NCBI GenBank assembly: GCA_002269645.1 | Contig: NIVC01000619.1 | Span: 1 to 64,000 of the forward strand | Reading direction: 5' to 3' | DNA length: 64,000 nt | From: Macrostomum lignano | Lineage: Eukaryota | Part shown: in pieces, positions 2,757 to 63,790 of the stretch | Numbering within the stretch: the stretch's first letter is position 1 | Layout: each line of letters opens with the position of its first letter | Position numbers and translations under genes: made by a program | Notes under the pieces: generated by a model | Databases searched by the model: none | Seen by the model: only the letters and a program-made list of their open reading frames with translations | What the model was told of the DNA's origin: nothing

Positions 2757-2951
2757 CTAACCAATCCTGACACGAAGACGGACGAACTTCTTCTTCAGCT
2801 TCGGAAACTGCTCCTCCGACACGCTGGACTCGTCCAGGTTGGACAGAGTCTCCTCCAGCACACGTTCGGCCATGGCCTTCTCCTCCTGGCTGGGCACGGC
2901 GACGGCCAGGGCTGCGCACAGCAAAAGTCCGAGAGCGAGTTGCCACTTCAT
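2757..2951 (-). CDS. Secreted prepropeptide copy 1 (64 aa; C-terminus KLKKK-FVRLRVRI-G)
   Basis: MKWQLALGLLLCAALAVA signal-like N-terminus, acidic spacer, KKK, terminal Gly-stop; family promoter at 3033-3065; nine further paralogs in the window. Confidence 0.9.
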   Translation of the reverse strand: MKWQLALGLLLCAALAVAVPSQEEKAMAERVLEETLSNLDESSVSEEQFPKLKKKFVRLRVRIG

Positions 2952-6141: not shown

Positions 6142-6360
6142 ATGAAGTGGCAGATCGCTCTCGGACTTCTGCTGTGCGCAGCCCTGGCCGTCGCCGAGCC
6201 CTCACGAGAGGAGAAGGCTGAGGCCATGGCCGTTCTGGAGGCTCTGTCCAACGTTGACGAGTCCAGCATGTCGGAGGAGGCCGTGGACACCGCTAAGAAG
6301 TGGCTCAGAGTTAGGGCCAGGGTTAGGGTCGGATCCAGGAGGAGGTCTAGGTCCGGTTAG
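6142..6360 (+). CDS. Secreted prepropeptide copy 2 (72 aa; AKK-WLRVRARVRVGSRRRSRS-G)
   Basis: Same architecture as copy 1; promoter module 6028-6060; divergent pro-piece and extended Arg/Ser tail. Confidence 0.9.
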   Translation: MKWQIALGLLLCAALAVAEPSREEKAEAMAVLEALSNVDESSMSEEAVDTAKKWLRVRARVRVGSRRRSRSG

Positions 6361-13091: not shown

Positions 13092-13280
13092 CTAACCGAA
13101 ATGAATATGGATGAACTTCTTCTTCAGCTTCGGGCTCTGCTCCTGCGACAGGCTGGACTCGTCCAGGTTGGACAGAGTCTCCTCCAGCACACGTTCGGCC
13201 TGGGCCTTCTCTTCTTGGGTGGGCATGGCGACGGCCATGGCTGCGAACAGCAAAAGTCCGAGAGCGAGTTGCCACTTCAT
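13092..13280 (-). CDS. Secreted prepropeptide copy 3 (62 aa; KLKKK-FIHIHF-G)
   Basis: Family architecture; promoter module 13365-13397. Confidence 0.9.
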   Translation of the reverse strand: MKWQLALGLLLFAAMAVAMPTQEEKAQAERVLEETLSNLDESSLSQEQSPKLKKKFIHIHFG

Positions 13281-14475: not shown

Positions 14476-14601
<126 letters not shown>

Positions 14602-16074: not shown

Positions 16075-16269
16075 CTAACCGATGTGGACCCTAACCCTGA
16101 AGATCTTCTTCTTCAGATCCATGGCCTTCTCCTCCGACACGTTGGGCTCGTCCAGGTTGGACAGAGTCTCCTCCAGCACACGTTCGGCCATGGCCTTCTC
16201 CTCCTGGCTGGGCACGGCGACGGCCAGGGCGGCGCACAGCAAAAGTCCGAGAGCGATCTGCCACTTCAT
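16075..16269 (-). CDS. Secreted prepropeptide copy 4 (64 aa; DLKKK-IFRVRVHI-G)
   Basis: Family architecture; promoter module 16351-16383. Confidence 0.9.
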   Translation of the reverse strand: MKWQIALGLLLCAALAVAVPSQEEKAMAERVLEETLSNLDEPNVSEEKAMDLKKKIFRVRVHIG

Positions 16270-17094: not shown

Positions 17095-18260
17095 GCACAG
17101 CGAGGAGGCGAGGGTCGCCCATTCCGCTAGCCCCCGAAGGCCACAGACAGGCAGAGGCGTGGGGCCGGTCAGGGTGGTCCGCTTCTCGCCGTCTTGGCGA
17201 GGGTGCCTGTCAACTCTTTCCCTGGAAACGCTTGCGTGCCCTCGGATCCACTTCAGCCTGACAGTAGTGCTGCTGGCCAGAAGGTTGAGCTGCCGGTTGC
17301 AGTCAGCGACTGTCTGGTATTTCATTGTGGTGTGGTAAAGGGCCTGTAAGGCTGCTTGGCTGTCAAAGTGAACCTACCAGTGTGCTGGACATGCGTGGCA
17401 ATGACGCGGCCGTTGATGCTGATGCAGACCCCAAAGCAGCCGCAGTGATTTTGATGGAACTCGTCCGTGTAACAAAGGACCTCCTGGAAATTCCAGCGGA
17501 CAGTGGCGGACAGAGGTGATGGTGACTTTGTAGCGCTGAAACAGTTTTAGAGTTCGAGGTTCACCAGCAGATCAAACGTGGAGCCCGCCACCGTCTCTCA
17601 AGTCTTTGAGGTAGAGGTCGGCGTGAGGCAGGAGCTTGCGCTTAGCCATGGCTCTATGGGACAGGAAACAAATGCCAGCGCTAATCAAACGGCGGACAGT
17701 CTTGGCGGCTTCGCTGCCAACAAAGATGTCCAGTAGGGGAATGTTAAGGAAAGCGTTGAGGCAATCATAAGGAGTAGACGTGTACTCCTGAGAGTCTCAA
17801 GGCAGATCTTCATCAGCAGGGCGCTAGCCCAGATAAGGCCGCCGTACGAGATAGCAGGCCTAACCATTGCAGTGCAGATCCACCAGAGACGTTTTGGAGT
17901 GAGCCCCCAGGTGGTGCCGACGGCCCTGTGCAGCTGCGCGAGGACTGCGAGGGCGCTCTTGGATTTGTCTGAACGTGGGGTGACCAGTTCAGCCTGTAAT
18001 CCAGGGTAATCCCTAGACATTTAGAAGAAGATTTCCCTTCCGTAAAGCGTGAGCGGTCGAATCTGCCACTTTGTCCTGCTGGTGAAAATGATCGCTGCCG
18101 TCTTAGTCTCGGAAAGCTTTAGACAACAGCGATCCGCCCATTGCTCAGCGGTGTAGATAAAAAAATCTGAAGGAAGTCCCTGAGGGTATCAGTGGACAGT
18201 TCAGACGCCAAGGCGGTGACATCGTCCGAGTAACCTACTTTTAGAATGGGGTCAGGCCGG
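17095..18260 (-). mobile_element. Inverted duplicate of the RT/RNase H LINE fragment at 4330-5480
   Basis: WGLTPKRLWWICTAMVRPAISYGGLIWA (ORF 17685-18020); LKWIRGH (ORF 16948-17325). Confidence 0.65.
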
Positions 18261-19504
18261 GCATCCGAAGGAGCTCATCGATGACTATATTCCAGAGACT
18301 TGAAGACATCATTCCACCTTGCGGGCTTACCTTTGCAGTCGGGGACCGTCCTCTGGTGGCCCAGCAAGCTGGTTATGGCCGTGCGATGGCTGATCATGTA
18401 CATGATCCACCTGGTGAGATGCTAGTAGTTTATCAACCAGGACGTGCAGCGTGCTTTCGGTGGAGTCATTTTTCAGATCCACTGAAAAGAAGGCGCCAGA
18501 GCAACGGTACCTCCATCAGCTTGACCATGGAGGAGGTCAGACTGATCGGTACTCAGCATCATCCACAAATGCCTCAGCACAAACCAGTCGAATCTCATTG
18601 AAAATTACAAAGGCTCAAGATGGATTGATAGGAAATTTAGAACGCAGAATGAATTAGAAGGTTGCGTGCATTTGTCATGTGACTTCTGTCTCTGTTTTAA
18701 CCGCATTATTCAGCCATCGCTGAGGCTGAGAAAAGGAAGAAAATCTGCAAAAATAATAGCAAGGTCATGAAAACGTGTTTGCCTCTGTCCCGGAGAGAAT
18801 GAGCAGGTTGGCTCTGCTGCTTGCTGATATCTGCTTTCCATCTGCCGATCAGACCCTGAGTCCCGCATCAACTAGGTACAAAAGTAGCATGCAGTGGGTC
18901 AATCTCCGATACGTATTGACAACGTCTTACGAGCTGTCATTTAGACGCAAAAAACCTTGGCAGGAAAGCAACTCAAACAAGTCTATTAAAGACTGTTTTA
19001 TGCTACTGGATCTTACATGTATATTATTCAAGTGTGGAGTTGCTCCTTGGCCCTATCTTCTGAGCTCTGTGCCTGAACAGTCAGGCACACGCATTGTAAT
19101 GCAGGGCACCTTGGCCAAAATTAATAAATCCATAATTTTGAATTTGCAAATTTTAATCCTTCTCTGAGGCTATCACCAATGCCTATTTGATGACTGCTAT
19201 ATGACACATTCCACTAGTGAAGTACGAGTGGTCATTTCAAACATCTATCTATTCTGCGCAAACAATTACAAGTCAGCTGCAAGAGACTGACGGTAAAATC
19301 TACTATGCAACTAAAAGTCAAATAGCTCAATCTGAATGGTCTATAGACCAGTTTCAGAGAGAAAATTCTCAAGAGTTATCTGTTTGACTGACAGCTGTCG
19401 TCAAGCAAACAAAAGCTGCATCATTTCTTGTAGGAAAGCAAGACAGTCTCTGTTCCGCTATTCTCACGTGAAAGAAGACAGGTCAAACAGCGTCGCTCCT
19501 CCGA

Positions 19505-19537
19505 CCGGAAACACGTGCCAATCCGATGCGCATAAAT
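19505..19537 (+). promoter_or_regulatory. Conserved 33-bp core promoter of the peptide family (ETS-like GGAA, E-box CACGTG, CCAAT, TATA-like CATAAAT); shown for copy 5
   Basis: CCGGAAACACGTGCCAATCCGATGCGCATAAAT, nearly identical at 3033-3065(-), 6028-6060, 13365-13397(-), 16351-16383(-), 21917-21949, 29587-29619(-), 35092-35124, 38938-38970 and 42242-42274, always ~80-95 nt before the ATG. Confidence 0.75.
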
Positions 19538-19618
19538 TCGGAACTCCCAACTGCTCAAGAAGTCAACTTTAAACTCGACTCAATCTACATACAGCTCGAA
19601 GACTCGACTCAAACAATC

Positions 19619-19813
19619 ATGAAGTGGCAACTCGCTCTCGGACTTTTGCTGTGCGCAGCCCTGGCCGTCGCCGTGCCCAGCCAGGAGGAGAAGGCCATGG
19701 CCGAACGTGTGCTGGAGGAGACTCTGTCCAACCTGGACGAGTCCAGCGTGTCGGAGGAGCAGTTTCCGAAGCTGAAGAAGAAGTTCGTCCGTCTTCGTGT
19801 CAGGATTGGTTAG
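19619..19813 (+). CDS. Secreted prepropeptide copy 5 (64 aa; same protein as copy 1)
   Basis: Inverted-duplication partner of copy 1. Confidence 0.9.
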   Translation: MKWQLALGLLLCAALAVAVPSQEEKAMAERVLEETLSNLDESSVSEEQFPKLKKKFVRLRVRIG

Positions 19814-20429
19814 ATGAGTTCTCAGATACACCTGAGATTGAAGTCCCTTCATCGTATATGACTGGCTTGACTCTGAACCCTGACTTGTGACCGGTATTCA
19901 GAGTGAAATTTTAAAAGCACTTGTTTACTGATCAGTTCTACCAAATATAACAACAATTACAACCCGTTCAAGCACTCAGCACAACTAAAAGTTAAAAGTC
20001 GTCTTGTTGAGCTATTTTAGTTTCAATTTGCAATTCGAAAGTCGCTGTGTGGAGGACTGGTACCTAAATGCATATAACTCGTAGCTAATGATTGGCTGCT
20101 TGTAATAGATCATCCGGCCTAAATTCCATTCAGTCAAGGATACGAATTTAATAACTAAAAATTCATCATTGAAACTGCTTTGTTTAAATAGATCTTGATG
20201 TCCAGATCGATTCTTCACTTGGCAAGATAGAATCAGATTTTGTGGGAGGGATAGCGTAGAAGACTATGGGTAGGTCAGACGCGTATTAAATGAAAAATGA
20301 AAGCCTGACATCTTTCTAGTTCATTTTTGCCATTACTGAAACTCTGCCAAGTACGAGTTATTTTCGGAAGAGATTCCAAGTTTTGCTCGAAAGCTCTGTG
20401 TGAATTTGAATTGCAGCTTTCATGGTTAT

Positions 20430-22040: not shown

Positions 22041-22235
22041 ATGAAGTGGCAGATCGCTCTCGGACTTTTGCTGTGTGCCGCCCTGGCCGTCGCCGTGCCC
22101 AGCCAGGAGGAGAAGGCCATGGCCGAACGTGTGCTGGAGGAGACTCTGTCCAACCTGGACGAGCCCAACGTGTCGGAGGAGAAGGCCATGGACCTGAAGA
22201 AGAAGATCTTCAGGGTTAGGGTCCGCATCGGTTAG
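22041..22235 (+). CDS. Secreted prepropeptide copy 6 (64 aa; DLKKK-IFRVRVRI-G)
   Basis: Family architecture; promoter module 21917-21949. Confidence 0.9.
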   Translation: MKWQIALGLLLCAALAVAVPSQEEKAMAERVLEETLSNLDEPNVSEEKAMDLKKKIFRVRVRIG

Positions 22236-23186: not shown

Positions 23187-23359
23187 GAGATCACTACTGA
23201 TTCTCTCGGGCCATTTTTTTCTTTCTATGCTTACAGAAACTCATTACCAAACTCCCTATCACTGCCTCTACCTCTCTGCGTCGCATTTCTTCCTCTCCGT
23301 CCCTCATCATCGCACTGTCTTTCTCTGTGAGTCTACGCTTATTTGATGAGCCCCCAATG
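23187..23359 (+). repeat. 173-bp direct repeat, left copy (partner 27072-27244)
   Basis: GAGATCACTACTGA...GAGCCCCCAATG appears identical in both copies by eye. Confidence 0.9.
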
Positions 23360-26300
23360 GAGTTGCGTTCCAGCTTACGCCAAGTGCCTTCGCGGTTGGT
23401 GATTCACCCTGCAGTAGTAGCTCAGCGCGTTCTGCCCTGTCTTCAACTGGAATCGATTGCAGGACTTCCTCAGAGTTCGAAAGCCACTTCCGAGCTCGCA
23501 TACCGGCTCTCTTCCACAGCTCCATCAGCTGCTCATACAACTGCTTTGCTTTCTCAACTGTCTCCATGGAGTCGAGACTGTCGTCCATGTAGGTGGACCT
23601 CAAAACCGTCGTTGCCGCCAAAGGCAGTTGATCCTGATGTTGCCTTGCATTCTCTTGTGCCACTAGTTGAGCCAGGAACGGGGAGCAGTTGACGCCAAAG
23701 ACCACGCTGCAGAACTCGTATACTTTTGGCTCACATTCCTTTTGCATTCCGCGCCACAAGAACCGAAAGAAGCGGCGATCATCTGGAGCCAACCGAATTC
23801 GAAGATACATTTCCTCAATATCACAAACTAGCGCGACCGGATGCTTGCGAAATCTTAGCAGCACGCTGACGAGATTGTTTTGCAGCTTCGGTCCGGTGTG
23901 GATGGCATCGTTAAGGCTGAGACCGCCACAGCGAGCAGACGCGTCAAAGACTATGCGAGTCTTTGTTGTCTCCTTGTCCGCTCTCACTACTGCAAAATGT
24001 GGCAGGTACCAACTTCCCTGACCGGCGGCTCCGTCGACTTCTTGAATGTAGCCCTTCTCCAGCTGTCCATCAAACACTCGCTGATACGCCTGCGCCAGCT
24101 CCGGGTTCTTCTTAAGCCGTTGCTCCGTATTAACGAGCCGCTGCCGCGCCATATCCTTGTTGTCTGGCAACGTTGTCGGATCCATCTTCCATGGGATCGC
24201 CACCTGGTAACGACCGGCCTCCATCCTCATTGAACTCTTCGTCAATTGAACGGTCTCTTGCTCTCCCATCGACAACGTGGCCATCGCTCCACCGTCGGGG
24301 ACCTCATCCACCTCCCAGAAACGCTTTAAAACGCCATCCAAGTCTCCATCCGCAATCGATAGGAAAGTCCTCTGTCGTCCAGCTTCCGGTCCGTAGTCCC
24401 TTATCGGTCCCACACACGTCCAACCGATCGGCGTCAGTCGCGCTGTCGGCTCTCCAGGTTGACCCCCGACCTCACGGCAGGCGAAGTGTAGATCAACGTG
24501 ATCGATGCCGATGAGCATGTCAACCGTCTGATTGCCTTCAACTCTGCTGAACGGAATGCCACGCAAATGATGCCACTGCGACGCTAGCTGACTCCAATCC
24601 ACGGCCTTCATATCACCCGTCACTTTCTCCGTGGTGTACGCCAAAACCCTAGCTCGAAACGCTCCATCAAGACTCTTCAAGTCCACTTCAACCGGCGCTG
24701 TCTGGAAGGTATTTACCTGTCCGTTGAGTACTTTAACGTTCATCTGCTCAAACTTCTCTTCCAGCCCAAGTTCGGCCGCCACGTCCGAGTTCAAATATGT
24801 TCTTGTGCTCGCATCATCCAGAAGCGCGTTGACTTGCACCTGTCGGTCTCCATTGGACAAGATCACCGGAACAGTTCGCAGCGCAACCGCAGCGGTCTCC
24901 CTAACTAGCAAAGTACAGGCTTCTCGCTGCTTGTTCATCGTCTCCTTCGGCCTCTCGCCTGAACTTGGCGCCTTGAGGACCTTCTGCGTCCCCCCTTCGT
25001 GGCGTGCCATCGACTCACTCTTTTGCGCTTGGTGGAGCAGCCGGTGATGCCTGGCCTTGCACCCGTCGATGCCGCAGCTTCGCAATCGTCTGCACGACAA
25101 ACTCATGTGGTTGCTTCCCAAGCACCCAAAGCACAGCTTCCACTCGCGTACCGCTGCCCATCGAGCTTCAACATCCATACGCGCAAACCTAGGGCACGCC
25201 CACACTCCATGCTGCTCTCCACAGAGACGACATAACCTACGGTTGTCTGTTGGTTCGACACTGCGACTTTCAGCGGCGTCGTTGTGAGTGAACAGTGTTC
25301 GCTGTGGTTCACGAGACCCTGACCACTTCTTCCCAGCTTCCCGACCGCCATCGCTCACCGGTACCACTCCTCGCGTCGCCTCCCACGCAATCGTCCGATA
25401 TTCAGCCTCCTGTAACAACCACTGATGGAGCACACTCAGCGAATCTACTTTAGAGTTCTCGCCCACCCACCGGTGATAGCGCGCCAAGGTGTCTGCGGGC
25501 AGCTTCCGCTGAACGCGCAAATGTAACAGGCCATTGCTACTTAGCTCAACGTCACGCCCAGCCGCCTTCAAATTATTCACGGTCACATCCAACAGGTCTG
25601 CCAACTTTTTTAACTGCGCTGCACTCTCCGTCTGAATCGGCCGAAAATTGTCCAAGTCTTCCAGAGCTAACGTTAATCTGCGTCTCTCTCCACCGTACTC
25701 TCGCTCTAAACGCTCTAGTGCAGACCGGTAGGCGAAAGCCGAGAACCCTAAATTCACAATAAGCTTAAGTGCCTCCCCTTGCAGGGATTGACGCAGCTGC
25801 AACAACTTGTACGCGTCTGAAGCCGGCGACTCATCCACACATGCATAGAAGGCAGCCTTCCACCCCTCATACTGCCGCTTGTCTCCTGAGAACACAGGAA
25901 TAGACACACGCTGCAATTGTCGCCACATGTCCTGTCCAATCCTAGCTGACTGATCCTCTGCGTACATTGCCGCCGCCTGCCCTGCTCCGCCAAATGATAG
26001 GCCAGCCCGCCACTCTGACTCAAATTGCCTAGGCCTTTCGTTTGCGCTAACTCCAGCCGGGCCAGTACGCGCAGTGTACATTTCGCTAATTGGGGTTGGC
26101 CGCCAGCCTGGATTGTTGATTGGCCACTCTTTGGGTTGCCACCCCTCCCCGTAGTTTGCGACTCCTCACGCGCTTCGTGTACACTTCGCGACTGAACTTG
26201 CTGCCGCTGAACTCCAACCACTCTGTCTAGCCTCTCCATTTCATACTCCAACTCCTTTTGCTTAGCCTCAAATGTTTCTCTCAACCGCTGTTGACGCTCT

Positions 26301-26770
26301 TCCAGTTCAGCTTTCTGACACTTTGCGGCCTCTAGCTCTCTCTGATGACCATCTCTCTCAAGGCTCTCGATAGCGTTCTGGCGCTCCCTCTTTCGCAATT
26401 CACCAAGCAGTGCCACTGTCTCGTTGTACTCACATTCGAGTGCTTCTAGCTCCTTCACCGTTTGGGCCTGCACCAGAAAGTTGCCTTCAGCCGCTTGTAG
26501 TAGGTCCTGAAGCACCGCACTGACACGCTCAGCCTGCTCGTCCAGCGCTCCGGCAATCTTCTCCGCGCCCTCCAGTGTCACGCCGTCCGAGTCGAGGTAC
26601 TTGAGTAGCTTGTTTCGCTGCTTAGTGAAGGCACATTTTTCGACAGCCTTTTTGCCCTTCAGTTGCACCACTCGTTGCTCCGATTCCGATCTCTCTTGAT
26701 TTCGCTCAGATGCTGATGCTGTTGCTGCTGCCGCTGCTGCATCCGCAGCCTTTTCGTCTCCGAATGACAT
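23360..26770 (-). pseudogene. BEL/Pao gag-pol polyprotein split over two overlapping ORFs (25754-26770 and 23307-26081)
   Basis: Coiled-coil gag N-terminus in ORF1; DUF1759-like FSGDKRQYEGWKAAF onward in the -1 frame; overlap ~26090-26160. Confidence 0.8.
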
Positions 26771-29300: not shown

Positions 29301-29495
29301 CTAACCGAACCTAACATGAACACGGACGAACTTCTTCTTCAGCTTCGGAATCTGCTCCTCCGACACGCTGGACTCGTCCAGGTTGGACAGAGTCTCCTCC
29401 AGCACACGTTCGGCCATGGCCTTCTCCTCCTGGCTGGGCACGGCGACGGCCAGGGCTGCGCACAGCAGAAGTCCGAGAGCGAGTTGCCACTTCAT
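29301..29495 (-). CDS. Secreted prepropeptide copy 7 (64 aa; KLKKK-FVRVHVRF-G)
   Basis: Family architecture; promoter module 29587-29619. Confidence 0.9.
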   Translation of the reverse strand: MKWQLALGLLLCAALAVAVPSQEEKAMAERVLEETLSNLDESSVSEEQIPKLKKKFVRVHVRFG

Positions 29496-30263
29496 GATTG
29501 CTTGAGTCGAGTCGAGTCGAGTCGTCGAGCTGTGTGTAGATTGAGTCGAGTTTGAAGTTGAATTCTTGAGACGCTGGGAGTTACGAATTTATGCGCATTG
29601 GATTGGCACGTGTTTCCGTTCGGAGGAGCGACTCTACTTAACTTGTCTGCTTTCATGTAAAAAGAGTCAAGCAGTGACATGCTTGTTTTCCTACAAAAAT
29701 GATGCAGCTTTTGTTTGCTTGACGACAGCTGTCAGTCAAACAGATAACTTTTGAGAGTTCTCTCAGAGCAAGTGTATTCAATTCAACGCGGTCGATTTGA
29801 CTCTTAGCCGCTGGAGACTGTTTAAACTTTACTGTGTACTCGTAAGCGAAAATTCAACAATGCGGGAACAATTTCTCATAGTAGGGTAACTAAATAACTC
29901 TGTTTTATTCCTTTTTGACTGCAAGAAATATTGCACATAGGCATTACTCTATTATCCCACGCGTAGATATGAGTATAGGGCCAAACGTTGTGTCATCTTG
30001 AAGAGAGCAAAATTTCCAACAACGGAGCGAAAAAATATCTTTGCAAATGCAACAAATTCAGAGGTAGACTTCAGAGAGGCATTTAAAGTTTAGCTGCAAT
30101 GCAAACAAGCTGGCCTTCAAATAATTTTGAGATAATTACGAACATTAAGCCCTGATACAGTTCAACTTCTATTGGTCCTTGGGTAGATCTTCAATACGTA
30201 TAGTTAATAGTTTGTAGTGAAACTACAACATAACTTAGATTTGAATTGCAATGTAACGATATA

Positions 30264-30352
30264 TACCGATTTTTTTCGGCAGCAATTGCGTAAGCTGAAG
30301 CCGCGTAGCGGCTGAAGCTTAGTAGAGCAATTGCTGCCGAAAAAAATCGGTA
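30264..30352. repeat. 89-bp foldback hairpin with perfect 26-bp arms
   Basis: TACCGATTTTTTTCGGCAGCAATTGC (30264-30289) is the exact reverse complement of 30327-30352; the loop has further pairing. Confidence 0.9.
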
Positions 30353-30449
30353 CATGTCATTATTGTACCCTTTTGACTTCCCTTGTATATGGCCCAGACA
30401 TAGTGCGGATGCTGAGTATGAAATGCGATTGTTGCCGGAATGCGCTTTG

Positions 30450-31155
30450 AAAGGGTTGTAGAGATAATCAATCGTATATGGCAAATTTAGTTGCTCTCTA
30501 AATGAAAGGGTTGTAGAGATAATTAATCGTTTATGGCAAATTTAAAGGACAGTGAAGACAGCTAGCCTGGCTGCCATGAGTTAATTCTCAAGTTGATTTT
30601 GAGCTTGAATTAATTCTCCTATTCGGAGTGCAAATAGGAAAAGTAGCTATGATTCGCTACGCAAACATTCCTGGCGGAGAAATATGTGGACTCTCCACGG
30701 ACGAGTTGGCTTTTGTCACCCGAGAGTCGAGCACGCGCTACGTTCTGGAGATGGACAACCTGGATGCGTCGTCCAGTTCCAACGGGCTGCCTGAGCTAGG
30801 TAGCGAAGATCTGGAAATTGACGACGATGCGGAATCCACCATCGAAAGTGTGACAACTGGGTCTGATAGAGGCGAGCTGATGAAAGCACCCGAGGGCGGC
30901 CAAGACCTGCCGAGAAGCCTCTGTGGTGGTCAGTTCCACAACTGCACATTCAACTTTTACGGAAAGTAAAACAATTGATTCGATCGGTTTGTTCTTAAGA
31001 ACTTTTTGTGACTATGAAACACTTTCGCCGTGTTGCTATTGTTGTTCCTTGTTTTGATAGCCAAATACATTCGTCTGAAATCCGGCAACAATCGAAAAAA
31101 GCCGACAAACAATTAAATTGTTACCGCAAGTATGAATGCCGGAAACCATAGACAA
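30450..31155 (+). mobile_element. Second Crypton-like deleted element with residual ORF 30628-30969
   Basis: Duplicated GATAATNAATCGTNTATGG motif like 27404-27422; ORF ends QFHNCTFNFYGK; CCATAGACAAAAG near 31146. No catalytic motif seen. Confidence 0.4.
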
Positions 31156-31294
31156 AAGGGAACAATATATTTTATGAGTTAACGACGAGAAGGCTTGGGG
31201 CGAGAAACTTAACTGCGAGAAAGAACTGTAAAAGGAAATTAGTCTATGGTAATTTATGACAAACTAAGTTGCAAATAAAAAGTACAACAAAATA

Positions 31295-34090
31295 CCCATA
31301 CGACTCCCCCCTCCAATTGCGGAGCACGGGGAAAAGAGACTGTAACTGAATTATAAAATGGTGGAATGGCTTAAATTATTGAAACGAAGCGGTTATACAG
31401 TTGAAATACGAGCTAAATTTATATGAGGGGTTGAACATTGAGAAATATTGAGAACAATGGAACAGCAGTCAGTAGACGTTATACATTACAAGGTTAATAA
31501 TAAATGTAATCATTATGGCGTCGGAATTGGACTCGGCGGCCGCTAGAGGTCGCTCTAGGAGTTGATGAGTCCATCGGTTCCTCTGGTTTGGCGGCTTCTT
31601 CCGGCAGCGAGTTCGCGGCCGGCTGAACAGCCGACTTCGGAAGCGAAAGTCGCGCCGGCTTGAGGCGATCGATAGAGACAGATTCGGTGTTGCCTGACGG
31701 TAGGAAAATAACGAAGAACTTGTCAGTTCGCTGTTTCACGCGATACGGCCCTGAGTACGGCGCCTCGAGCGGCGACCGCACGCGATCGACCCGAACCCAG
31801 ACGAATTCAGCCATTTCCAGGTCCTTGGGTACGTAGCTCCGTGGTTCGTGCGTCTTCGCGTGTGGACTCGGTAACTCTGTCAGCAGTTCCTGCAGCCGTG
31901 TCCGAATGTCCGTTGGGGCGAGTGGTTCAGAAGTTAGAATGCGCAGAACCATCGGAAGCTCGCCGGTAACCCTGGTGAACGGTGATATTCCTTGGTCGTC
32001 AGGTGCGACGTGCATCGCGAGGAGAGCCACAGGTAGGTCTGTCAGCCAGTCATTGCCTCGAGCACGTAGCATCGTCTTCAGGGTGCGATGGGCTCGCTCG
32101 ACCTTGCCATTGGTTTGAGGGTGGTAGGCCGTTGTGCGTAATCGATGAAAACCAATTGATGACGAGACCGAGTGAAAGAATTCTGATTCGAACTGGCGCC
32201 CCCGATCAGTGATTACATACAGTGGCACTCCGTAGCGCGAGACCCAAGACGAGACGAATGCATGGGCGACTACTTCCGCGGTTATTGATTCCAGTGGTGT
32301 AGCTTCTAGCCAGCCAGTCGAGCGGTCGACCATCGTGAGAAGGTAGCGGGCAGACTGGTGGCCAAAGGTGGTAGCATTAGCTGGTGGAAGTGGTCCCACA
32401 ATATCGATGTGTACCGCCTCAAAGCGATTTGATGGTAATGCGAAGGCCTGTTGCGGGGAGACAGTGTGGCGAGTGACTTTACTCCGTTGGCAGTCCTGGC
32501 AGTTCCAGCAGTAGGTCTTGATGGACTTGCGCATTCCGGGCCAAAAGTAACGTTCTGTGATGAGTTTTGCTGTTTTACGGTAGCCGAAATGACCAAGTCG
32601 ATGGAAGGAGGCAATTACGGCGTCGCGGAGAGACGGCGGAATGATCGGGCGAGGATACGGCGTTGACGTCTCACACCAAACGACGACGTCTTTGTCCAGA
32701 GAATACGATCGAATATTTGGTGCAGGTGAGAACGACTCCGGTCGTTGTGCTTCAGCGATACTGGGCAGATCAACAGGGAATTGGCTTGATGGGGCAGCGA
32801 CTACAGCGACTGTTGCGATGTTGGACACGCGATCATTCACTGGGAAGTCAGGCAGTCGAGAAAGGGCATCAGCTATTACGTTGTCTGCACCGCGAATGTA
32901 CTGGACATCTGCCACGTACTCGGACAAGATGGTCAAGTAGCGCTGATTGCGATCTGACGTAGTGGTGCGATTGGCGTGGAAGGCCTGAGCTAGTGGTTTA
33001 TGATCGGTGAACAAGGTCACGCTCAGTCCTTCAATGAGGTTGCGGAAGTGCAACACTGCCAGGTACGCCGCGAGTAGTTCTCGATCGAACGTGCTGTACA
33101 TCCTTTGAGATGATGACAACTTCTTGCTGAACATGCCAAGAGGTGACGTTCCGGTTGAAGAGGTTTGATGCAGAACGGCACCAACACAGTCGGCTGAGGC
33201 ATCAGTGTACAGGTGGTACGCAGTACAGTTGGGGTCCGGATGATGCAGCAGTAGTCTCTCTGAGAGAGCTTGTTTGATGTTTTCGAAAGATTTCTGATGC
33301 TGCTCTGCCCATTGGAAGTTTCCTGCTGACTGTAGTGATGCAGTGAGTAGGTCTTGCAGCGGACAGATGCGGTCGGCAAATTTGGGAACGAATCGACGGT
33401 AGAAACCGACGACACCGAGGAAGCGCCGAAGTGCGTTCGAATCCGTGGGTGTCGGCCAGTCAGTGATTATTTGGATCTTCTTCTGGAGAGGTTTTATTCC
33501 TTCAGGAGTCACGCGATGGCCAAGGAAATCTACCTCGGACTGAAAGAATTCGCACTTCTTCAAATGAACCTGTAGGCCGTGTGTTCTTAGGCGGTCCAAA
33601 ACTTGTTCCAAATGCGAGTAGTGGTCCTCACGAGTCTTTGAGAATATCAGGACATCATCGATGTAAGAGATGACGAATGACAGTCCGTGAAAAACAGAGT
33701 CGATGAAGCGTTGAAATGTTTGTGCTGCATTCCTCAGGCCGAAGGGCATGCGTGTGTACTCGAACAATCCAAACGGTGTGGTGATAGCGGTTTTGCAAAT
33801 ATCCTCTTCGGCGACTGGAATTTGATGAAAGGCGCGAACAAGGTCTAACTTTGAAAACACAGTGCTTCCGTGTAGGTACCGAGTGAAGGTTTGAATTTGT
33901 GGAACCGGATAGTTGTCCGGCTTTGTTTGTTTGTTCAATTCGCGATAGTCACCGCACGGACGCCAGCCAGCTCCCTTGGGTGCCATGTGGAGGGGTGACG
34001 CCCAAGGGCTTGAGGAAGGTCTGAGGTAGCCAGCATCGATTAGTTGCTGAAACTCCTGCTTTGCAGCCTGTAGTTTTGCAGGGTGCAGGA
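31295..34090 (-). mobile_element. 5'-truncated Ty3/Gypsy element (CsRN1-like) with uninterrupted RT-RNase H-integrase ORF (31494 to ~34090)
   Basis: [40 protein letters not shown] zinc finger (H..GH...C..C), HIDIVGP, ITDRG, NGKVER, C-terminal SSGRRVQF; polypurine tract GGAGGGGGGAG at 31304-31314. Confidence 0.92.
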
Positions 34091-35208
34091 TATTTTGTTG
34101 TACTTTTTATTTGCAACTCAGTTTGTCATAAATTACCATAGACTAATTTCCTTTTACAGTTCTTTCTCATAAACCCATAAGTTTATCATTTAGATGTACG
34201 AACTAAAAACATGTGCAGGAAAGCAACTGAAACAAGTGTCCATTAAAATAACTGCTACAAACACTGCCGGGTTGCTGAATTGTAGTGAAAATATTGGGTC
34301 AGGTGCGATGTATTAATTGTTTAAAAACATTGGTGATATTTTGAGTTGTAGAAGATGACAAGTTGTGACTTTAAAAAACTTATTTTGGGTGCATTTTGGG
34401 TTATTTTGGACCGAAAGCTTCCTGACGACTACTAGTCGATAAGACGGCGAGTCGATATGACTGAATTCTTAGAAACAGGGAAAATGATCGCAGAAATTGA
34501 ACCAAATAAAGCACACAGCTAAATAGAGACTCTGTGTGCACATTGATCTTTGTGTAGCAGCTTATACGGGGGCTTGTGGACAACCTTCTTAAACTGGCTG
34601 GCTTGCACATAACAATCACATTTCAATCATTAAGAATCACTCCAGAAAGTGCAAAAAATTCCAAAATTTTGAGCTCGTACATTAACCAAAATGAATAAGA
34701 GCGTGAAGTCGCATCTTATAGAATTAATACAAAAGCTTGTAGAATAGTTGGTTGCGTATATAGTCAAAATATAGACATGTGTAATACCGTATTAGCTTTC
34801 GTTTCAGTGTGAGAGCCTCGACCGGCTTCCGAACTCTTCCCGAACCCACCATACTCCATGACATGGGCCAAATTGATCAACCGCCATAGGCTCTCGTAAA
34901 CGTAACTTCGAAACTGACTAAATTCAAATAGACCAAACTGAAATACAAACATTTACACTAAAAAACGCTCGAGTTGAGGGTTACCTGTTTGATAGACAGC
35001 TTTCATCAAACAAGCAAAGGCTGCAGCATATTCGCAGTCTGTGCTCCACCCCGCTCACGTGACATCAATTCCAACGACTTTTCTCCTAGGACCGGAAACA
35101 CGTGCCAATCTGATGTGCATAAATTCGGAACTGCCGACTGCTCAACACAACAATCTCACATTCGACTCAATCTACACAGCTCGAAGACTCGACTCGACTC
35201 AAGCAATC

Positions 35209-35397
35209 ATGAAGTGGCAACTCGCTCTCGGACTTTTGCTGTTCGCAGCCATGGCCGTCGCCATGCCCACCCAGGAGGAGAAGGCCCAGGCCGAACGTGT
35301 GCTGGAGGAGACTCTGTCCAACCTGGATGAATCCAGCCTGTCGCAGGAGCAGAGCCCGAAGCTGAAGAAGAAGTTCATCCATATTCATTTCGGTTAG
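35209..35397 (+). CDS. Secreted prepropeptide copy 8 (62 aa; same protein as copy 3, FIHIHF-G)
   Basis: Family architecture; promoter module 35092-35124. Confidence 0.9.
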   Translation: MKWQLALGLLLFAAMAVAMPTQEEKAQAERVLEETLSNLDESSLSQEQSPKLKKKFIHIHFG

Positions 35398-36659: not shown

Positions 36660-36910
36660 GTCGCTAGTCGGACCGGGAACAGCGGAACCTTCCGACTGCT
36701 CAGAAACTTAACAATACAGCTACACACAGAAGGCCGTCGACAACGCTAAGAAGTGGCTAAGGGTTAGGGCTAGGGTTAGGATCGGTAAATCTGTCTGTCG
36801 CACAACATCTGTGATCAAACTCGCTTCATCGAAAGGCCAAGGCAAGGCTTGTGGGTACTAAGAGCTCACAGACAGCTGACACTACTCTGAACTCTGACCC
36901 GTGACCGCTT
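36660..36910 (+). pseudogene. Deleted pseudogene of the peptide family (copy-10 type)
   Basis: Promoter core lost; 5' UTR fused (ACACAG|AAGGCC) to KAVDNAKKWLRVRARVRIG; 1-nt deletion removes the stop; 3' flank matches copy 10. Confidence 0.85.
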
Positions 36911-37261
36911 TATTATTGACTGATCAGAATTAACAAAGCAAGGACAGTCTGTCCAAGCTATCAGCACCTTTAAACGGTTTTTTGAAGTTATTATTTACTC
37001 TGATTTACAAGTTATACGACATTGGATTGGTACTTGAGTTTATACAGTAGCAATGCACTTCGGCAACGGCTGGCGGTTCAATGCGTCAGCGGTCAGCAAG
37101 GAGGAACCCTTCTGGTAAACTACGAGTAGCTTGTAATGGTAGGCCAACGGGCGACAACAGGAACCCCAGCGTTCCACTCATCCCGACGCCAGGGCTGGAA
37201 TGCTTCATCGTCCAACGAGAACTGCAGAAACGCCTAGCTGAGATCAATATTCGAGAAATTC

Positions 37262-39054: not shown

Positions 39055-39243
39055 ATGAAGTGGCAACTCGCTCTCGGACTTTTGCTGTTCGCAGCCATGG
39101 CCGTCGCCATGCCCACCCAGGAGGAGAAGGCCCACGCCGAACGTGTGCTGGAGGAGACTCTGTCCAACCTGGACGAGTCCAGCCTGTCGCAGGAGCAGAG
39201 CCCGAAGCTGAAGAAGAAGTTCATCCATATTCATTTCGGTTAG
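39055..39243 (+). CDS. Secreted prepropeptide copy 9 (62 aa; FIHIHF-G; one pro-piece Q to H change versus copy 8)
   Basis: Family architecture; promoter module 38938-38970; flanks homologous to copy 8. Confidence 0.9.
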   Translation: MKWQLALGLLLFAAMAVAMPTQEEKAHAERVLEETLSNLDESSLSQEQSPKLKKKFIHIHFG

Positions 39244-41820: not shown

Positions 41821-42365
41821 CCATTGTGGGAACTATTTCTAGAAACAAAGACAGGGGTAAAGAGTAAAGGACTAAAGGCCAATCAACAACATTTTCAATC
41901 CATTTTGTTTTTCTCCGGCTTTGTAAGCTGGTGTGACTGGCAGCTACTGTTAACTTCCAATGCCAAGGTCCGTCGACGTGAATTCGACCAAAAAATCTCT
42001 AAAATTGATTCACTTTGCTAAAAATTAGTTGATTTTGGCATCTTACACAGCTAGGAGTCAAATTGCAGCGAGTTTGATAAACGAGTACATGTACTGTGAA
42101 ATATTTCTAGCGGTACTCGTTTGATTGGCAGCTGTCGTCAAACAAAGAAAGGCTGCATAGTACTCTCGCAGACAAGCAAACCGTGTAGCTATGCTCATGC
42201 TCACGTAAAAGCAAAAAAGTCAAACAACGATGCTCTTTGGACCGGAAACACGTGCCAATCCGTTGCGCATAAATTGGGAACTCCCAACTGCTCAAGAACT
42301 CAACTTTAAACTCGACTCAATCTACACACAGCTCGAAGACTCGACTCGACTCGACTCAAGCAATC

Positions 42366-42566
42366 ATGAAGTGGCAAATCGCTCTCGGACTTTTGCTGTG
42401 CGCAGCCCTGGCCGTCGCCGTGCCCAGCCAGGAGGAGAAGGCCATGGCCGAACGTGTGCTGGAGGAGACTCTGTCCAACCTGGACGAGTCCAGCGTGTCG
42501 GAGGAGAAGGCCGTCGACAACGCTAAGAAGTGGCTCAGGGTTAGGGCTAGGGTTAGGATCGGTTAA
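42366..42566 (+). CDS. Secreted prepropeptide copy 10 (66 aa; AKK-WLRVRARVRI-G)
   Basis: Family architecture; promoter module 42242-42274. Confidence 0.9.
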   Translation: MKWQIALGLLLCAALAVAVPSQEEKAMAERVLEETLSNLDESSVSEEKAVDNAKKWLRVRARVRIG

Positions 42567-48742: not shown

Positions 48743-50950
48743 ATCTCAGTGCCTGTCTCAGCTTGTCAGTCGAGTTGTATCCTGTGTGTGTCTCAGTGCC
48801 TGCAACAGCTTGTCAGTCGAGTTGTATCCTGTGTGTGTCTCAGTGCCTGCAACAGCTTGTCAGTCGAGTTGTATCCTGTGTGTGTGTCTCAGTGCCTGCA
48901 ACAGCTTGTCAGTCGAGTTGTATCCTGTGTGTGTGTCTCAGTGCCTGCAACAGCTTGTCAATCGAGTTGTATCCTGTGTGTGTGTCTCAGTGCCTGCAAC
49001 AGCTTGTCAGTCGAGTTGTATCCTGTGTGTGTCTCAGTGCCTGCAACAGCTTGTCAGTCGAGTTGTATCTTGTGTGTCTCAGTGCCTGCAACAGCTTGTC
49101 AGTCGAGTTGTATCCTGTGTGTGTCTCAGTGCCTGCAACAGCTTGTCAATCGAGTTGTATCCTGTGTGTGTCTCTGTGCCTGCAACAGCTTGTCAGTCGA
49201 GTTGTATCCTGTGTGTGTCTCAGTGCCTGCAACAGCTTGTCAGTCGAGTTGTATCCTGTGTGTGTCTCAGTGCCTGCAACAGCTTGTCAGTCGAGTTGTA
49301 TCCTGTGTGTGTGTCTCAGTGCCTGCAACAGCTTGTCAGTCGAGTTGTATCCTGTGTGTGTGTCTCAGTGCCTGCAACAGCTTGTCAGTCGACTTGTATC
49401 CTGTGTGTGTCTCAGTGCCTGCAACAGCTTGTCAGTCGAGTTGCATCTTGTGTGTGTCTCAGTGCCTGCAACAGCTTGTCAGCCGAGTTGTATCCTGTGT
49501 GTGTCTCAGTGCCTGCAACAGCTTGTCAGTCGAGTTGTATCCTGTGTGTGTGTCTCAGTGCCTGCAACAGCTTGTCAGTCGAGTTGTATCTTTTGTGTCT
49601 CAGTGCCTGCAACAGCTTGTCAGTCGAGTTGTATCCTGTGTGTGTCTCAGTGCCTGCAACAGCTTGTCAGTCGAGTTGTATCCTGTGTGTGTGTCTCAGT
49701 GCCTGCAACAGCTTGTCAGTCGAGTTGTATCCTGTGTGTGTCTCAGTGCCTGCAACAGCTTGTCAGTCGAGTTGTATCTTGTGTGTCTCAGTGCCTGCAA
49801 CAGCTTGTCAGTCGAGTTGTATCCTGTGTGTGTCTCAGTGCCTGCAACAGCTTGTCAATCGAGTTGTATCCTGTGTGTGTCTCTGTGTCTGCAACAGCTT
49901 GTCAATCGAGTTGTATCCTGTGTGTGTCTCAGTGCCTGCAACAGCTTGTCAGTCGAGTTGTATCCTGTGTGTGTCTCAGTGCCTGCAACAGCTTGTCAGT
50001 CGAGTTGTATCCTGTGTGTGTGTCTCAGTGCCTGCAACAGCTTGTCAGTCGAGTTGTATCCTGTGTGTGTGTCTCAGTGCCTGCAACAGCTTGTCAGTCG
50101 ACTTGTATCCTGTGTGTGTCTCAGTGCCTGCAACAGCTTGTCAGTCGAGTTGCATCTTGTGTGTGTCTCAGTGCCTGCAACAGCTTGTCAGCCGAGTTGT
50201 ATCCTGTGTGTGTCTCAGTGCCTGCAACAGCTTGTCAGTCGAGTTGTATCCTGTGTGTGTCTCAGTGCCTGCAACAGCTTGTCAGTCGAGTTGTATCTTT
50301 TGTGTCTCAGTGGCTGCAACAGCTTGTCAGTCGAGTTGTATCCTGTGTGTGTCTCAGTGCCTGCAACAGCTTGTCAGTCGAGTTGTATCCTGTGTGTGTG
50401 TCTCAGTGCCTGCAACAGCTTGTCAGTCGAGTTGTATCCTGTGTGTGTCTCAGTGCCTGCAACAGCTTGTCAGTCGAGTTGTATCCTGTGTGTGTCTCAG
50501 TGCCTGCAACAGCTTGTCAGTCGAGTTGTATCTTGTGTGTCTCAGTGCCTGCAACAGCTTGTCAGTCGAGTTGTATCCTGTGTGTGTCTCAGTGCCTGCA
50601 ACAGCTTGTCAGTCGAGTTGTATCCTGTGTGTGTCTCAGTGCCTGCAACAGCTTGTCAGTCGAGTTGTATCCTGTGTGTGTCTCAGTGCCTGCAACAGCT
50701 TGTCAGTCGAGTTGTGTGTGTCTCAGTGCCTGCAACAGCTTGTCAGTCGAGTTGTATCTTGTGTGTGTCTCAATGCCTGCAACAGCTTGTCAGTCGAGTT
50801 GTATCCTGTGTGTGTCTCAGTGCCTGCAACAGCTTGTCAGTCGAGTTGTATCCTGTGTGTGTCTCAGTGCCTGCAACAGCTTGTCAGTCGAGTTGCATCC
50901 TGTGTGTGTCTCAGTGCCTGCAACAGCTTGTCAGTTGAGTTGTATCCTGT
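48743..50950. repeat. 45-49-bp satellite (GTCTCAGTGCCTGCAACAGCTTGTCAGTCGAGTTGTATCC + (TG)n), about 47 units
   Basis: Directly visible; the three 700+ aa ORFs are by-products. Confidence 0.97.
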
Positions 50951-51356: not shown

Positions 51357-51874
<518 letters not shown>

Positions 51875-61409: not shown

Positions 61410-63580
61410 AGACCTGTTGAATCTTGTACTTGTATTGTCATGCTTTTGGTGTGAAAACGCATTGCTTTTTACTTGTGAATTGATCAGAATATTGAATTCT
61501 CCTCCTCTCTACCGTTCTCTCCATCCTACCGTCCTCTCCATCCTACCGTCCTCTCCATCCTACCATCCTCTCTACCCCACCATCCTCTCCACCCTACCGT
61601 TCTCCATTTCCCCTTTCTACCGTCTTCACACCTCCATATTTCTCAACTAAGAAATTTTAAATTCAAATTGAATCGGACGAATTCAAGTTAAAATAAATTA
61701 TACTCTGTATATCTTGGCCAGTTTTTACTGATTTATTGGCCTGTGCAATTACTGTTGTAATGTATTTGTATTTCGGTATTGCAGAAAAGGATAAACAGAG
61801 CTAAATGAAAAATATCGGTGCGAGCTGTAAACTTTCCATTGTTAGCGAACGCATCGCTTGCTTGCTTTGGATGTTATTCTGCTACTGTTTATCACTTTAT
61901 GAATTGAATTGAATCGCTGATTGCCTCTCTGAGTGGCAAAAAAATGCAATACTTGCTGGTGCGCACTTGTCTTTTGTTTATCTATTCGATATCGCTGTGT
62001 AATTTAATAATAAACCAACCGCGTTAATAATATTAGTACAGCTAATTTTTATATAGTCAATTGAAAGAGACGGCTCAAGGCTAAGTTTGTTTTTGTCGAA
62101 GTACACGGTGCACCGTGTGTTACATTAACAAGATGAAATATTTAATTTTTGCCATGACATGTCAATAAATATTAGCTAAATGTTACTTTAGGCGATATAA
62201 GGTTTCGATGTCGTGTCGTCGCTCTCTTTTATGGGAATGCGAACAGAATCAAGCAGCATGACATGATTGGCGCTGAACGGTACAGTAGTTTGGAATTCAG
62301 AATAACACAATCCAGAATAGATTAAATTAAATGAACCCGTGGAAACTTTTAGCTAACTAAAGTTGAATCAAAGCAGAGCACACGGAACAGACACCAAAAG
62401 CTTGGTTAGCTTGGGGAAAAGCCATTGCACTCGTGCAATAAAAATAACATTTTGGTTCACCAAGCAGTTATTCTAATTCCCGCTTGAAAACTCTATAATA
62501 TATCAACAGTAGCGCGTACAATTACAGACTGTCAGAAGTGTATTTGAAAAATCTAATGACAACCATTGGTATGAAAGCGACCTGTCAGTCGAAGTACATC
62601 TTGATTTTGTTTTTGTGAGTAATCGAAAATTTAAACTCGTGCTTAAAAACGATATATTTTTTAAATAAAATGTTTTGAACAATTAGGCTATATTTGCGGG
62701 TTTTGGCACGAATTTAAATTTTCTATTATTCAACAACGAAATAATCGTCTGCTAGACGAATATCGATAACTTTAATGAAGTAACTAAAGTACAGAAAATA
62801 ATTTGGCTACAAATGAAAACACGATGGTCATTGTTAAATAACGCACGCATACTGTAAGATGAGTTTTTTGAAAGCCAATTGACTTGACAAGTACAACAAC
62901 ACGGAAAAGAGTTATAACGCATTCGACCGCCGAACGTAGCTGTCAGCGAGGAGGAAACTATGAGGAAGTGCGAGCAACAAAGAAAATCGCTGGATGATGA
63001 TCATAAGTAGCATAGCATGATTTTCCTTATTATTTGTGTAGCAATGAATAAAAACTCGTAATAACTATATATATTTCACTACATATCGGCTCAACTCAAA
63101 ATAACTATTGATTAGAAATACTTAGTTAGATGCAAATGTTAAGCAACAAGAATAGTACCATTAGCAACAAAATAATCCCAGTCTGCTTCCCAAAATGATA
63201 CTTCAACAAAGGTGATATGCACCGCTGCATAATCGCGCGATTAGAGCAAATCCACCCGTTCAGCCGGCGCCACTGCCCTCCATCTGGTCCGTCACGCTCA
63301 GTCCATAGATTCGCTTCCGGAATGCCTCCCTGTGCTGCTCTTGTAAACTGCTCTTTGGCTTGCTCCGCTTCAGATTGCCGTCCCACTGCAGGTCAACCAG
63401 ACCGCCGCGGCCGGCAATTTGACGCTTCACCGATTGGCGAAGGCAACCTTAGTGGAATTTCATTTCGATACATATCGTCTGAACTTTTGTCAATTATGCT
63501 ACTGTAGCATCACTGTGCAAAGACTAAATTATGAGGCGAAATGGGGATATTTTGTTATGGGGAGGCTCTAGAGAGATTCT

Positions 63581-63790
63581 AAGGGATACCTGTGGGCGAT
63601 TCACATGGATACCTGTGGGAAGTTCTCAGGGATACCTGTGGGCGATTCTCAGGGATACCTGTGGGCAATTCTCAAGGATACCTGTGGGCAATTCTCATGG
63701 ATACCTGTGGGCAATTCTCAGGGATACCTGTGGGCAATTCTCATGGATACCTGTGGGCGATTCTCAGGGAGCCTGTAGGAAATTCTCAAA
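63581..63790. repeat. 23-bp minisatellite (AGGGATACCTGTGGGCAATTCTC), about 9 units
   Basis: Directly visible. Confidence 0.9.

Follow-up and report, generated by a model that had tools for sequence, protein, structure and literature searches.

What are the very short peptides of the flatworm Macrostomum lignano for, in which hydrophobic and basic residues alternate so strictly, and what maintains this pattern? The question is raised by positions 1 to 64,000 of contig NIVC01000619.1 (assembly GCA_002269645.1, forward strand), the whole stretch of DNA analysed here and called the window, and in particular by a gene at 42366..42566. Its 3' end (42519-42566) translates as N-A-K-K-W-L-R-V-R-A-R-V-R-I-G-stop. 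Judged from the sequences, the gene belongs to a multigene family that is restricted to Macrostomum and arranged in tandem, and whose secreted prepropeptides most likely give rise to host-defence peptides, antimicrobial or cytolytic, a reading to which we give a probability of about 0.55. A first-pass annotation of the same DNA had stressed that the peptides, as beta-strand amphiphiles, may act as self-assembling nanofibres or membrane-active sheets, and the possibilities are weighed below.

Gene structure and processing signals

A six-frame scan of the window found ten canonical, intronless paralogs of one family, one variant gene and one pseudogene. The order within each gene is signal peptide, acidic propiece, KK or KKK, short peptide, glycine and stop, and the glycine-stop ending is present in 10 of the 11 genes. 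The focal gene has 66 codons on the forward strand and is intron-free. Its signal peptide, MKWQIALGLLLCAALAVA (42366-42419), is followed by the acidic propiece VPSQEEKAMAERVLEETLSNLDESSVSEEKAVDNA (42420-42524), KK (42525-42530), the predicted mature peptide WLRVRARVRI (42531-42560), the glycine that would be the amide donor (42561-42563) and the stop codon (42564-42566). The term mature is used throughout for a prediction from processing signals, and the signal peptide was assigned by inspection of the sequence. It has the form MKWQ[IL]ALGLLLCAALAVA, with a basic n-region, a hydrophobic core of 14 residues and A-x-A at -3/-1, and it shows little or no variation across the whole set of members. 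The propiece contains 8-10 Asp/Glu and has a net charge of -5 to -7 when KK(K) is excluded, and KK is invariant across the aligned family members.

In a protein search the focal product was 100% identical to the M. lignano hypothetical proteins BOX15_Mlig004045g1 and g2, and the remaining matches were from M. lignano too. An exact-protein look-up with the 66-residue product returned no record with that exact start. The proteins encoded by the window are recorded on a contig of 208.6 kb.

All ten canonical products are predicted to be hydrophobic-hydrophobic-(R/H-hydrophobic)n, with n=2-4 and a length of 6-10 residues. The six peptide types listed by the first-pass annotation, FIHIHF, FVRLRVRI, IFRVRVRI, IFRVRVHI, FVRVHVRF and WLRVRARVRI, were all recovered at the ends of paralogous open reading frames (ORFs), each after KK or KKK and before glycine-stop. 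It was also right in calling them cysteine-free and provided with an amidation signal, the C-terminal glycine of the precursors. Arginine contributes +2 to +4 to the mature peptides and histidine comes in addition; FIHIHF is basic only through its histidines. The general rule that was proposed, two hydrophobic residues followed by (basic-hydrophobic)n and glycine, describes all ten canonical genes, but it fails for an insertion in the variant gene (6142-6360) and for other tails in the wider superfamily.

The genes also share their upstream DNA. A core promoter element of 32 nt, CGGAAACACGTGCCAATCCGTTGCGCATAAAT, is situated about 92 nt upstream of the focal ATG (42243..42274, forward strand) and includes a CACGTG E-box, a CCAAT and a TATA-like CATAAAT. 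It has exactly ten matches in the window, one ahead of each intact gene, the variant included, where 0 would be expected. A second conserved block, with a CAGCTG E-box, is found about 230 nt before each ATG (e.g. 42126-42135). Most genes have it as the perfect palindrome GACAGCTGTC, the focal gene has it as GGCAGCTGTC, and upstream of the pseudogene it survives as GACAGTTGTC. This block is a possible tissue-specific enhancer.

Selection on the alternating pattern

The different parts of the genes have diverged to very different degrees. Between six lineages, the signal peptide has a mean pairwise nucleotide identity of 0.95, the propiece one of 0.87, and the promoter and 5' untranslated region (UTR) one of 0.82-0.83. 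For the mature part and the 3'UTR the values are only 0.42 and 0.45. Pooled Nei-Gojobori estimates of nonsynonymous (pN) and synonymous (pS) divergence were 0.014 and 0.064 for the prepro part, and 0.224 and 0.371 for the mature part. These selection tests are rough, since the regions are small and the pairs non-independent.

To this we can add a replacement test on 11 distinct peptides of the subfamily, from the window and from other M. lignano loci. Peptides from other loci that fit the pattern are IFRVHVRF, FVRVRVRL, IFRVRARIHI, FVRVRARIRL and FIRARVRVRL, the last of which was identified after the test and fits as well. There are at least 14 amino-acid replacements among the eleven peptides and all of them stay within their class: hydrophobic remains hydrophobic and basic remains basic (R/H only, never K), which confirms the earlier claim that substitutions preserve the alternation. 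If nonsynonymous single-base changes were random, 0.59 of those at hydrophobic positions and 0.14 of those at basic positions would be expected to stay within the class. From these probabilities P~8e-6 follows, or P~3e-4 when, as an adjustment of our own, R->H is set to 0.5 for CpG transitions; as a rough range, P is 1e-3 to 1e-5. Single 8-mers are not individually significant, as 12-15% of shuffles match their beta hydrophobic moment. Because the shuffling of single peptides is weak, the significance of the alternation rests on the comparison across paralogs.

The DNA encoding the peptide has diverged to the level of the 3'UTR while the class of every position has been kept, and therefore selection acts on the amphipathic pattern. 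As judged from these sequences, the alternation is selectively maintained, in the sense that the physicochemical pattern is preserved and not the exact sequence. This is as expected of membrane-active peptides, unlike receptor ligands.

Receptor ligands have to be considered, since the peptides could be neuropeptides or peptide hormones, RFamide/RIamide-like and kin in type to the (G)YIRFamide FMRFamide-like peptides (FLPs), with neuronal release and action on G protein-coupled receptors. The KK/KKK site together with the C-terminal glycine as amide donor is in line with this, and the flatworm FLPs (YIRFamide, GYIRFamide, RYIRFamide, GNFFRFamide) are short, amidated and released at basic sites as well. 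FVRVHVRF and IFRVHVRF would end in -VRFamide, near the -IRFamide of flatworm FLPs. However, it is at the C-terminus, where a receptor would recognise the peptide, that residues vary freely (I/F/L/V or H; R/H at -2), whereas the signal peptide is nearly invariant. The C-termini are -VRI, -VHI, -VRF, -IHF, -VRL, -IRL, -IHI and -FH, and the conserved [YF]-I-R-F-amide is not among them. There are dozens of paralogs with a single peptide per precursor, and sister genes with the same cassette bear polycationic tails of 18-37 residues. True flatworm neuropeptide families are as a rule conserved across the phylum; the FLPs have a conserved C-terminal motif and occur flatworm-wide, while the present family has a variable C-terminus and was found only in Macrostomum, with no ortholog in other flatworms among 1.84 billion representative proteins, from which some flatworm proteomes are possibly absent. 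A neuropeptide function thus seems very unlikely. We prefer host defence because the tandemly arrayed genes combine a constant secretory cassette with cationic C-termini that are hypervariable.

A probable role in host defence

For host-defence peptides we infer secretion, cleavage, amidation, a beta conformation and antimicrobial activity, which could follow one another in this way. The 18-residue signal peptide would direct the precursor to the endoplasmic reticulum, and the acidic propiece may neutralise or mask the cationic tail in transit and storage. A proprotein convertase would cleave after the invariant KK/KKK, and the C-terminal glycine would become the amide. The released peptide of 6-10 residues would, if extended, have one wholly hydrophobic face and one face of Arg/His. 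Like the designed (IRIK)2-NH2 and [KL]n, it would act as a beta-strand amphiphile that attaches to the anionic surface of microbes and breaks up membranes. In FIHIHF, and in GFHVHFH from another part of the contig, histidine is the only basic residue, and these forms would become charged only when the pH is low or metal ions are present.

The turnover of the family supports this picture, with 11 genes and one pseudogene in 64 kb, further clusters, and a mosaic prepro at a second locus (L002, described below). The GenBank gene models of the family derive from an RNA-seq-based, genome-guided transcriptome, so that transcription of the family is supported indirectly.

Several points weigh against host defence. 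The peptides have no sequence homology to known families of antimicrobial peptides (AMPs), and short KK-flanked, Gly-amidated peptides are also what a neuropeptide production route would give. At neutral pH FIHIHF lacks a fixed positive charge, unusually for an AMP. The AlphaFold2 model of the precursor is all-helix with low confidence (predicted local distance difference test, pLDDT, 65.6; predicted template modelling score, pTM, 0.25) and gives no support for a beta structure. The pN/pS of the mature part, 0.60, falls short of formal proof for positive selection, and the raised synonymous divergence could instead stem from gene conversion that homogenises the 5' half only. Furthermore, the literature and supplements searched contained no data on expression site, induction, peptidomics or activity: peptide strings and Mlig gene ids gave no mention in the open literature searched, and the supplements of papers on aging, ploidy and flatworm-specific genes had no matches to the gene ids tried.

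A part of the evidence would suit other secreted effectors equally well, either cytolysins that deter predators or are directed at prey, or fast-evolving reproductive (seminal-fluid) peptides. Small secreted peptides which are lineage-restricted, fast-diversifying and tandemly duplicated are typical of toxins and reproductive proteins too, and a rapid evolution of reproduction-related genes in Macrostomum has been described (PMC7336406). A cytolysin and an AMP cannot be told apart by a cationic amphipathic chemistry, and this explanation therefore overlaps with the favoured one. The texts searched contained no link of the family to prostate or tail transcripts. We regard these other effector roles as unlikely.

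Predicted conformation and possible self-assembly

The beta hydrophobic moment of the window peptides is 1.1-1.45 at 180 degrees (about 0.6 in the forms with histidine only), as compared to 0.2-0.8 at 100 degrees. The same calculation gives 1.70 for the designed antimicrobial IRIKIRIK and 1.28 for [KL]5, and the predicted beta-amphipathicity of the window peptides is thus in the range of designed beta-sheet antimicrobials.

This is also the property on which the nanofibre idea is built, namely that the main role of the peptides would be self-assembly into extracellular beta-sheet fibres or gels (mucus, rhabdite material, nets that trap bacteria) and not soluble membrane action. A strict polar/apolar alternation under selection, together with a high beta moment, would be in agreement with it. 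FIHIHF resembles the designed catalytic amyloids of the IHIHIQI type. The string IHIHIQI occurs in PMC10759172. [KL]n peptides of at least 10 residues form amyloid-like fibrils with phosphate (PMC7378186), and designed His/aromatic oligopeptides give pH-reversible fibrils (PMC8375021), so that assembly is chemically plausible, especially for the histidine forms. On the other hand, most members have a charge of +3 to +5 on 8-10 residues and no complementary acidic residues, which opposes assembly in solution. The 6-mer [KL]3 neither aggregated nor fibrillated, and for [KL]n peptides it was unproductive to aggregate before binding to membranes (PMC7378186). A similar alternation is found in jelleine-I, a natural amidated 8-mer reported to be helical in sodium dodecyl sulphate (SDS) micelles (PMC10819630), and the relatives in the superfamily are non-alternating. 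Fibre formation as the main role is decidedly unlikely.

There is also a bolder proposal. The peptides could be natural, genetically encoded counterparts of designer beta-sheet amphiphiles, with the propiece as an anti-aggregation chaperone, Arg forms that assemble into beta-sheets on microbial surfaces, and His-only forms (FIHIHF-NH2, GFHVHFH-NH2) that are functional amyloids in mucus or glands, switchable by pH or Zn/Cu, the length being tuned by 6-nt slippage. This proposal we consider unlikely.

Lineage restriction and the wider superfamily

Profile searches of 5.8 billion proteins and of 1.84 billion representative proteins, a word-indexed search among them, returned only M. lignano proteins, one Logan contig and two weak matches, to a plant protein and an unnamed protein, which are probably spurious. 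No homolog outside Macrostomum was found in the protein and profile searches, whose databases may lack some flatworm proteomes, and the precursor had no Pfam match above threshold. A match to PF22991, on an acidic helix-prone stretch, scored 21.5 bits against a cut-off of 27 bits and was taken as spurious. On the Logan contig (L001, 929 bp, from SRR31628392) lies a divergent homolog of genomic origin, in which the promoter, GACCGGAAA...GCATAAAT, can be recognised and the tail consists of (LPRVR)n repeats; the contig may come from another Macrostomum species.

Within M. lignano, where the census beyond the window rests on annotated proteins, more clusters of the family are present on other contigs, with dozens of paralogs and one peptide per precursor. 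The same signal, propiece and KK cassette carries widely different tails of 6 to 37 residues. The tail GFHVHFH-G, a 7-mer with glycine first and histidine last, is found many times, including several copies on the contig to which the window belongs, and other close relatives encode FHLHLP-GK. The earlier suggestion that length changes only in dipeptide steps can for this reason be kept for the window subfamily, but not for the wider family. Other tails are WRRRRRFRWRKAIRVAGKVAKAVL, WRIKSACKIFRRLLHLARKCYAKK-G, FRIRIRWGRVARNVLRLL-GK, WLLRRIRIRWRRVLRVASRVYRIYRYLPI-GK and FLRVRLPRVRMPRVRLPRVRLPRLRVRFRWSKK, and there are also Pro/Arg repeats, an (LPRVR)n repeat, tails that are Arg/Tyr/His-rich, helix-like or with two cysteines, Arg runs, and Arg/aromatic-rich tails of 18-37 residues. 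Two paralogs on other contigs (P0021 and P0034) combine the cassette with a non-cationic Tyr/Lys/Pro decapeptide, AVYKPNYYKD or AVYKPNYNKD. This type of tail is loosely reminiscent of the decapeptide repeats of mussel adhesive proteins.

Because the same cassette bears unrelated tails, the strict alternation, as far as these sequences tell, defines one subfamily inside a superfamily of cationic peptides. It had been argued that orthologs breaking the alternation would speak against the amphiphile idea, and at the superfamily level the alternation is indeed broken by Pro/Arg, helix-like, two-Cys and Arg-run tails, while the window subfamily keeps it. Taken from the sequences, this points to the beta-amphiphile as one of several designs in a broad host-defence superfamily, and is not evidence of a dedicated fibre-forming material.

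Length steps and telomere-like hexamers

At the DNA level the 6-, 8- and 10-residue forms differ by units of 6 nt. In the WLRV... subclade the core is made up of consecutive AGGGTT/AGGGCT units, a telomere-type hexamer in the Arg-Val frame (42535-42558, 6311-6328, 36758-36781). There were 5 matches to TTAGGG-like 18-mers against 0.02 expected, all of them within the peptide-coding DNA of the WLRV... genes and the pseudogene, and the resemblance exceeds what the peptide sequence forces (P ~4e-4 to 8e-3). The subclades using CGT/CAT showed no excess telomere similarity. All ten canonical genes end with glycine-stop as GGTTAG, a permutation of TTAGGG, or GGTTAA.

Slippage or duplication of a 6-nt unit may account for the length steps, as the sequences suggest. 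A telomere-repeat origin of the entire family was rejected, since the excess of TTAGGG similarity is confined to the WLRV... subclade; a telomere-type repeat is kept as a possible local mechanism for the expansion from 8 to 10 residues.

A further explanation would be that the ORFs are non-functional by-products of a repetitive element and that the alternation is merely an AGGGTT hexanucleotide repeat read in frame. The TTAGGG-like 18-mers of the WLRV... genes and the pseudogene, beyond the similarity forced by the peptide, are what it can build on. But the other subclades have the same amino-acid pattern with different codons (CGT/CAT, GTC/CTT/ATT) and no telomere excess, and the family has intact ORFs, signal peptides, conserved promoters and an RNA-seq-based annotation. 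The decayed copy at 36729-36935 shows what a non-functional member looks like. This explanation is hardly credible.

Organisation of the cluster and surrounding DNA

Besides the focal gene, the forward strand carries the genes for FVRLRVRI-NH2 (19619..19813), IFRVRVRI-NH2 (22041..22235) and, twice, FIHIHF-NH2 (35209..35397 and 39055..39243), all named by their predicted mature peptides. On the reverse strand are those for FVRLRVRI-NH2 (2757..2951), FIHIHF-NH2 (13092..13280), IFRVRVHI-NH2 (16075..16269, protein P0005) and FVRVHVRF-NH2 (29301..29495, protein P0007). The two FVRLRVRI genes are held by a 3.2-kb inverted duplication (2319-5478 vs 17091-20251, 96% identity), so that the gene at 19619 lies within the inverted duplicate of the 2757 locus.

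The variant gene (6142..6360, forward strand) has an intact promoter (6029-6060) and encodes WLRVRARVRV followed by G-SRRRSRS-G-stop. The strict pattern is broken because 24 nt, GGATCCAGGAGGAGGTCTAGGTCC, have been inserted in frame after the last Val codon, ahead of the Gly codon, which lengthens the core by 8 residues, GSRRRSRS-G. The RRR in the insertion could be an additional cleavage site, going by the motif. No matching annotated protein was found among the search returns.

The pseudogene (36729..36935, forward strand) is a 5'-truncated copy of a WLRVRARVRI gene which keeps ...EKAVDNAKKWLRVRARVRIG and the 3'UTR. Its signal peptide and promoter element are gone, as is most of the propiece, and a deletion of 1 nt, from GGTTAA to GGTAAA, has removed its stop. 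Its presence is evidence of birth-and-death turnover in the cluster.

A second copy of window 28.4-54.7 kb, 97-99% identical, is present in the same assembly (L002, NIVC01000181.1:456149-476395) and encodes four peptides identical to those of the window segment. There, however, the prepro of the FVRVHVRF gene is a mosaic with residues typical of the IFRV... genes (M19, DEPNV), which is direct evidence that paralogs exchange prepro segments and points to gene conversion. Such exchange may be one reason why synonymous divergence is low in the 5' half. A segment of about 4 kb in the window, 30213-34180, is missing from L002 and looks like a recent retroelement insertion; within it, at 31494-33986 on the reverse strand, is a pol ORF with reverse transcriptase, RNase H and integrase domains, probably of the Ty3/gypsy type.

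The intergenic DNA consists of long terminal repeat (LTR) retroelement ORFs and satellites. Retroelement ORFs at 23307-26770 (reverse strand) contain DUF1759 and a reverse-transcriptase domain and are preceded by a coiled-coil-like ORF, and a separate reverse-transcriptase fragment is found at 286-870 (reverse strand). The arrays comprise an 18-bp unit x23 (7913-8332), a 23-bp unit x119 (8418-11162), a 47-bp unit x47 (48744-50950), (TCTA)n x130 (51357-51874), (CTA)n x44 (14471-14600) and another 23-bp unit x9 (63576-63788). Such satellite and microsatellite arrays generate long spurious ORFs.

Known systems and significance

A conserved prepro part combined with a hypervariable mature part is found in frog-skin AMP and conotoxin genes, and the frog genes form a multigene family as the Macrostomum genes do. 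The cathelicidins, among them the bovine dodecapeptide bactenecin RLCRIVVIRVCR, indolicidin, PR-39 and the protegrins, likewise place unrelated cationic C-termini (beta, Pro/Arg-rich, helical) behind one conserved pro-region, and the dodecapeptide is close to the Macrostomum peptides in its R/V/I/L composition and size. Unlike the cathelicidins, the Macrostomum precursors have no cathelin domain in Pfam, the window peptides are Cys-free, and the acidic propiece is short and not a folded domain. In the mussel myticalins the anionic region is said to be C-terminal to the peptide. Their sequences are unrelated and the peptides longer. They too are lineage-specific multigenic linear cationic AMPs that came out of genome and transcriptome mining (PMC5577615).

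Frog AMP precursors of the preprodermaseptin type share the signal, the acidic spacer, the dibasic site, the short cationic peptide and often the Gly amide donor, and undergo convertase processing (PMC13444074). There is no sequence homology between the two. The site is KK/KKK in Macrostomum and mostly KR in frogs, and the Macrostomum peptides are beta-patterned, of 6-10 residues and from intronless genes, whereas those of frogs are mostly helices of 13-35 residues.

There is also a likeness in design to synthetic peptides. The designed (IRIK)2-NH2, or IK8L, is broadly bactericidal (PMC4330034), and the activity of [KL]n is highest at 10 residues (PMC7378186). Both share with the Macrostomum peptides the hydrophobic/cationic alternation, a length of 8-10 residues, a comparable beta moment and the C-terminal amide, which in Macrostomum is a prediction. 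Unlike these, the natural peptides open with a pair of hydrophobic residues, have Arg/His and never Lys as their basic residues, and carry one charge fewer for their length. The jelleines of honeybee royal jelly (PFKISIHL-NH2) are natural, Cys-free, amidated and antimicrobial 8-9-mers in which hydrophobic residues alternate with K/S/H (PMC10819630), but they are cut from the C-terminus of the large MRJP-1, not made from dedicated prepropeptide genes, and have a lower charge.

The kind of system, secreted cationic peptides on a conserved cassette, is thus known, while the peptide design, ultrashort, Cys-free, alternating and with Arg/His only, is unusual for a natural product. No description of the family was found in the open literature searched.

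The innate-immune effectors of flatworms are poorly known. If the host-defence reading is true, M. lignano would possess a large lineage-specific superfamily of AMP type, with a compact conserved promoter suited to reporter constructs, in an animal where transgenesis is established (PMC5730564). Conserved cassettes with hypervariable tails would then also have a clean example from an animal that is neither a vertebrate nor a cone snail. The window subfamily would be a natural case of the ultrashort alternating beta-amphiphile, a design reached independently by peptide engineers, and would show which variations of it selection tolerates: arginine or histidine but never lysine, two hydrophobic residues at the N-terminus, and lengths of 6, 8 or 10 residues.

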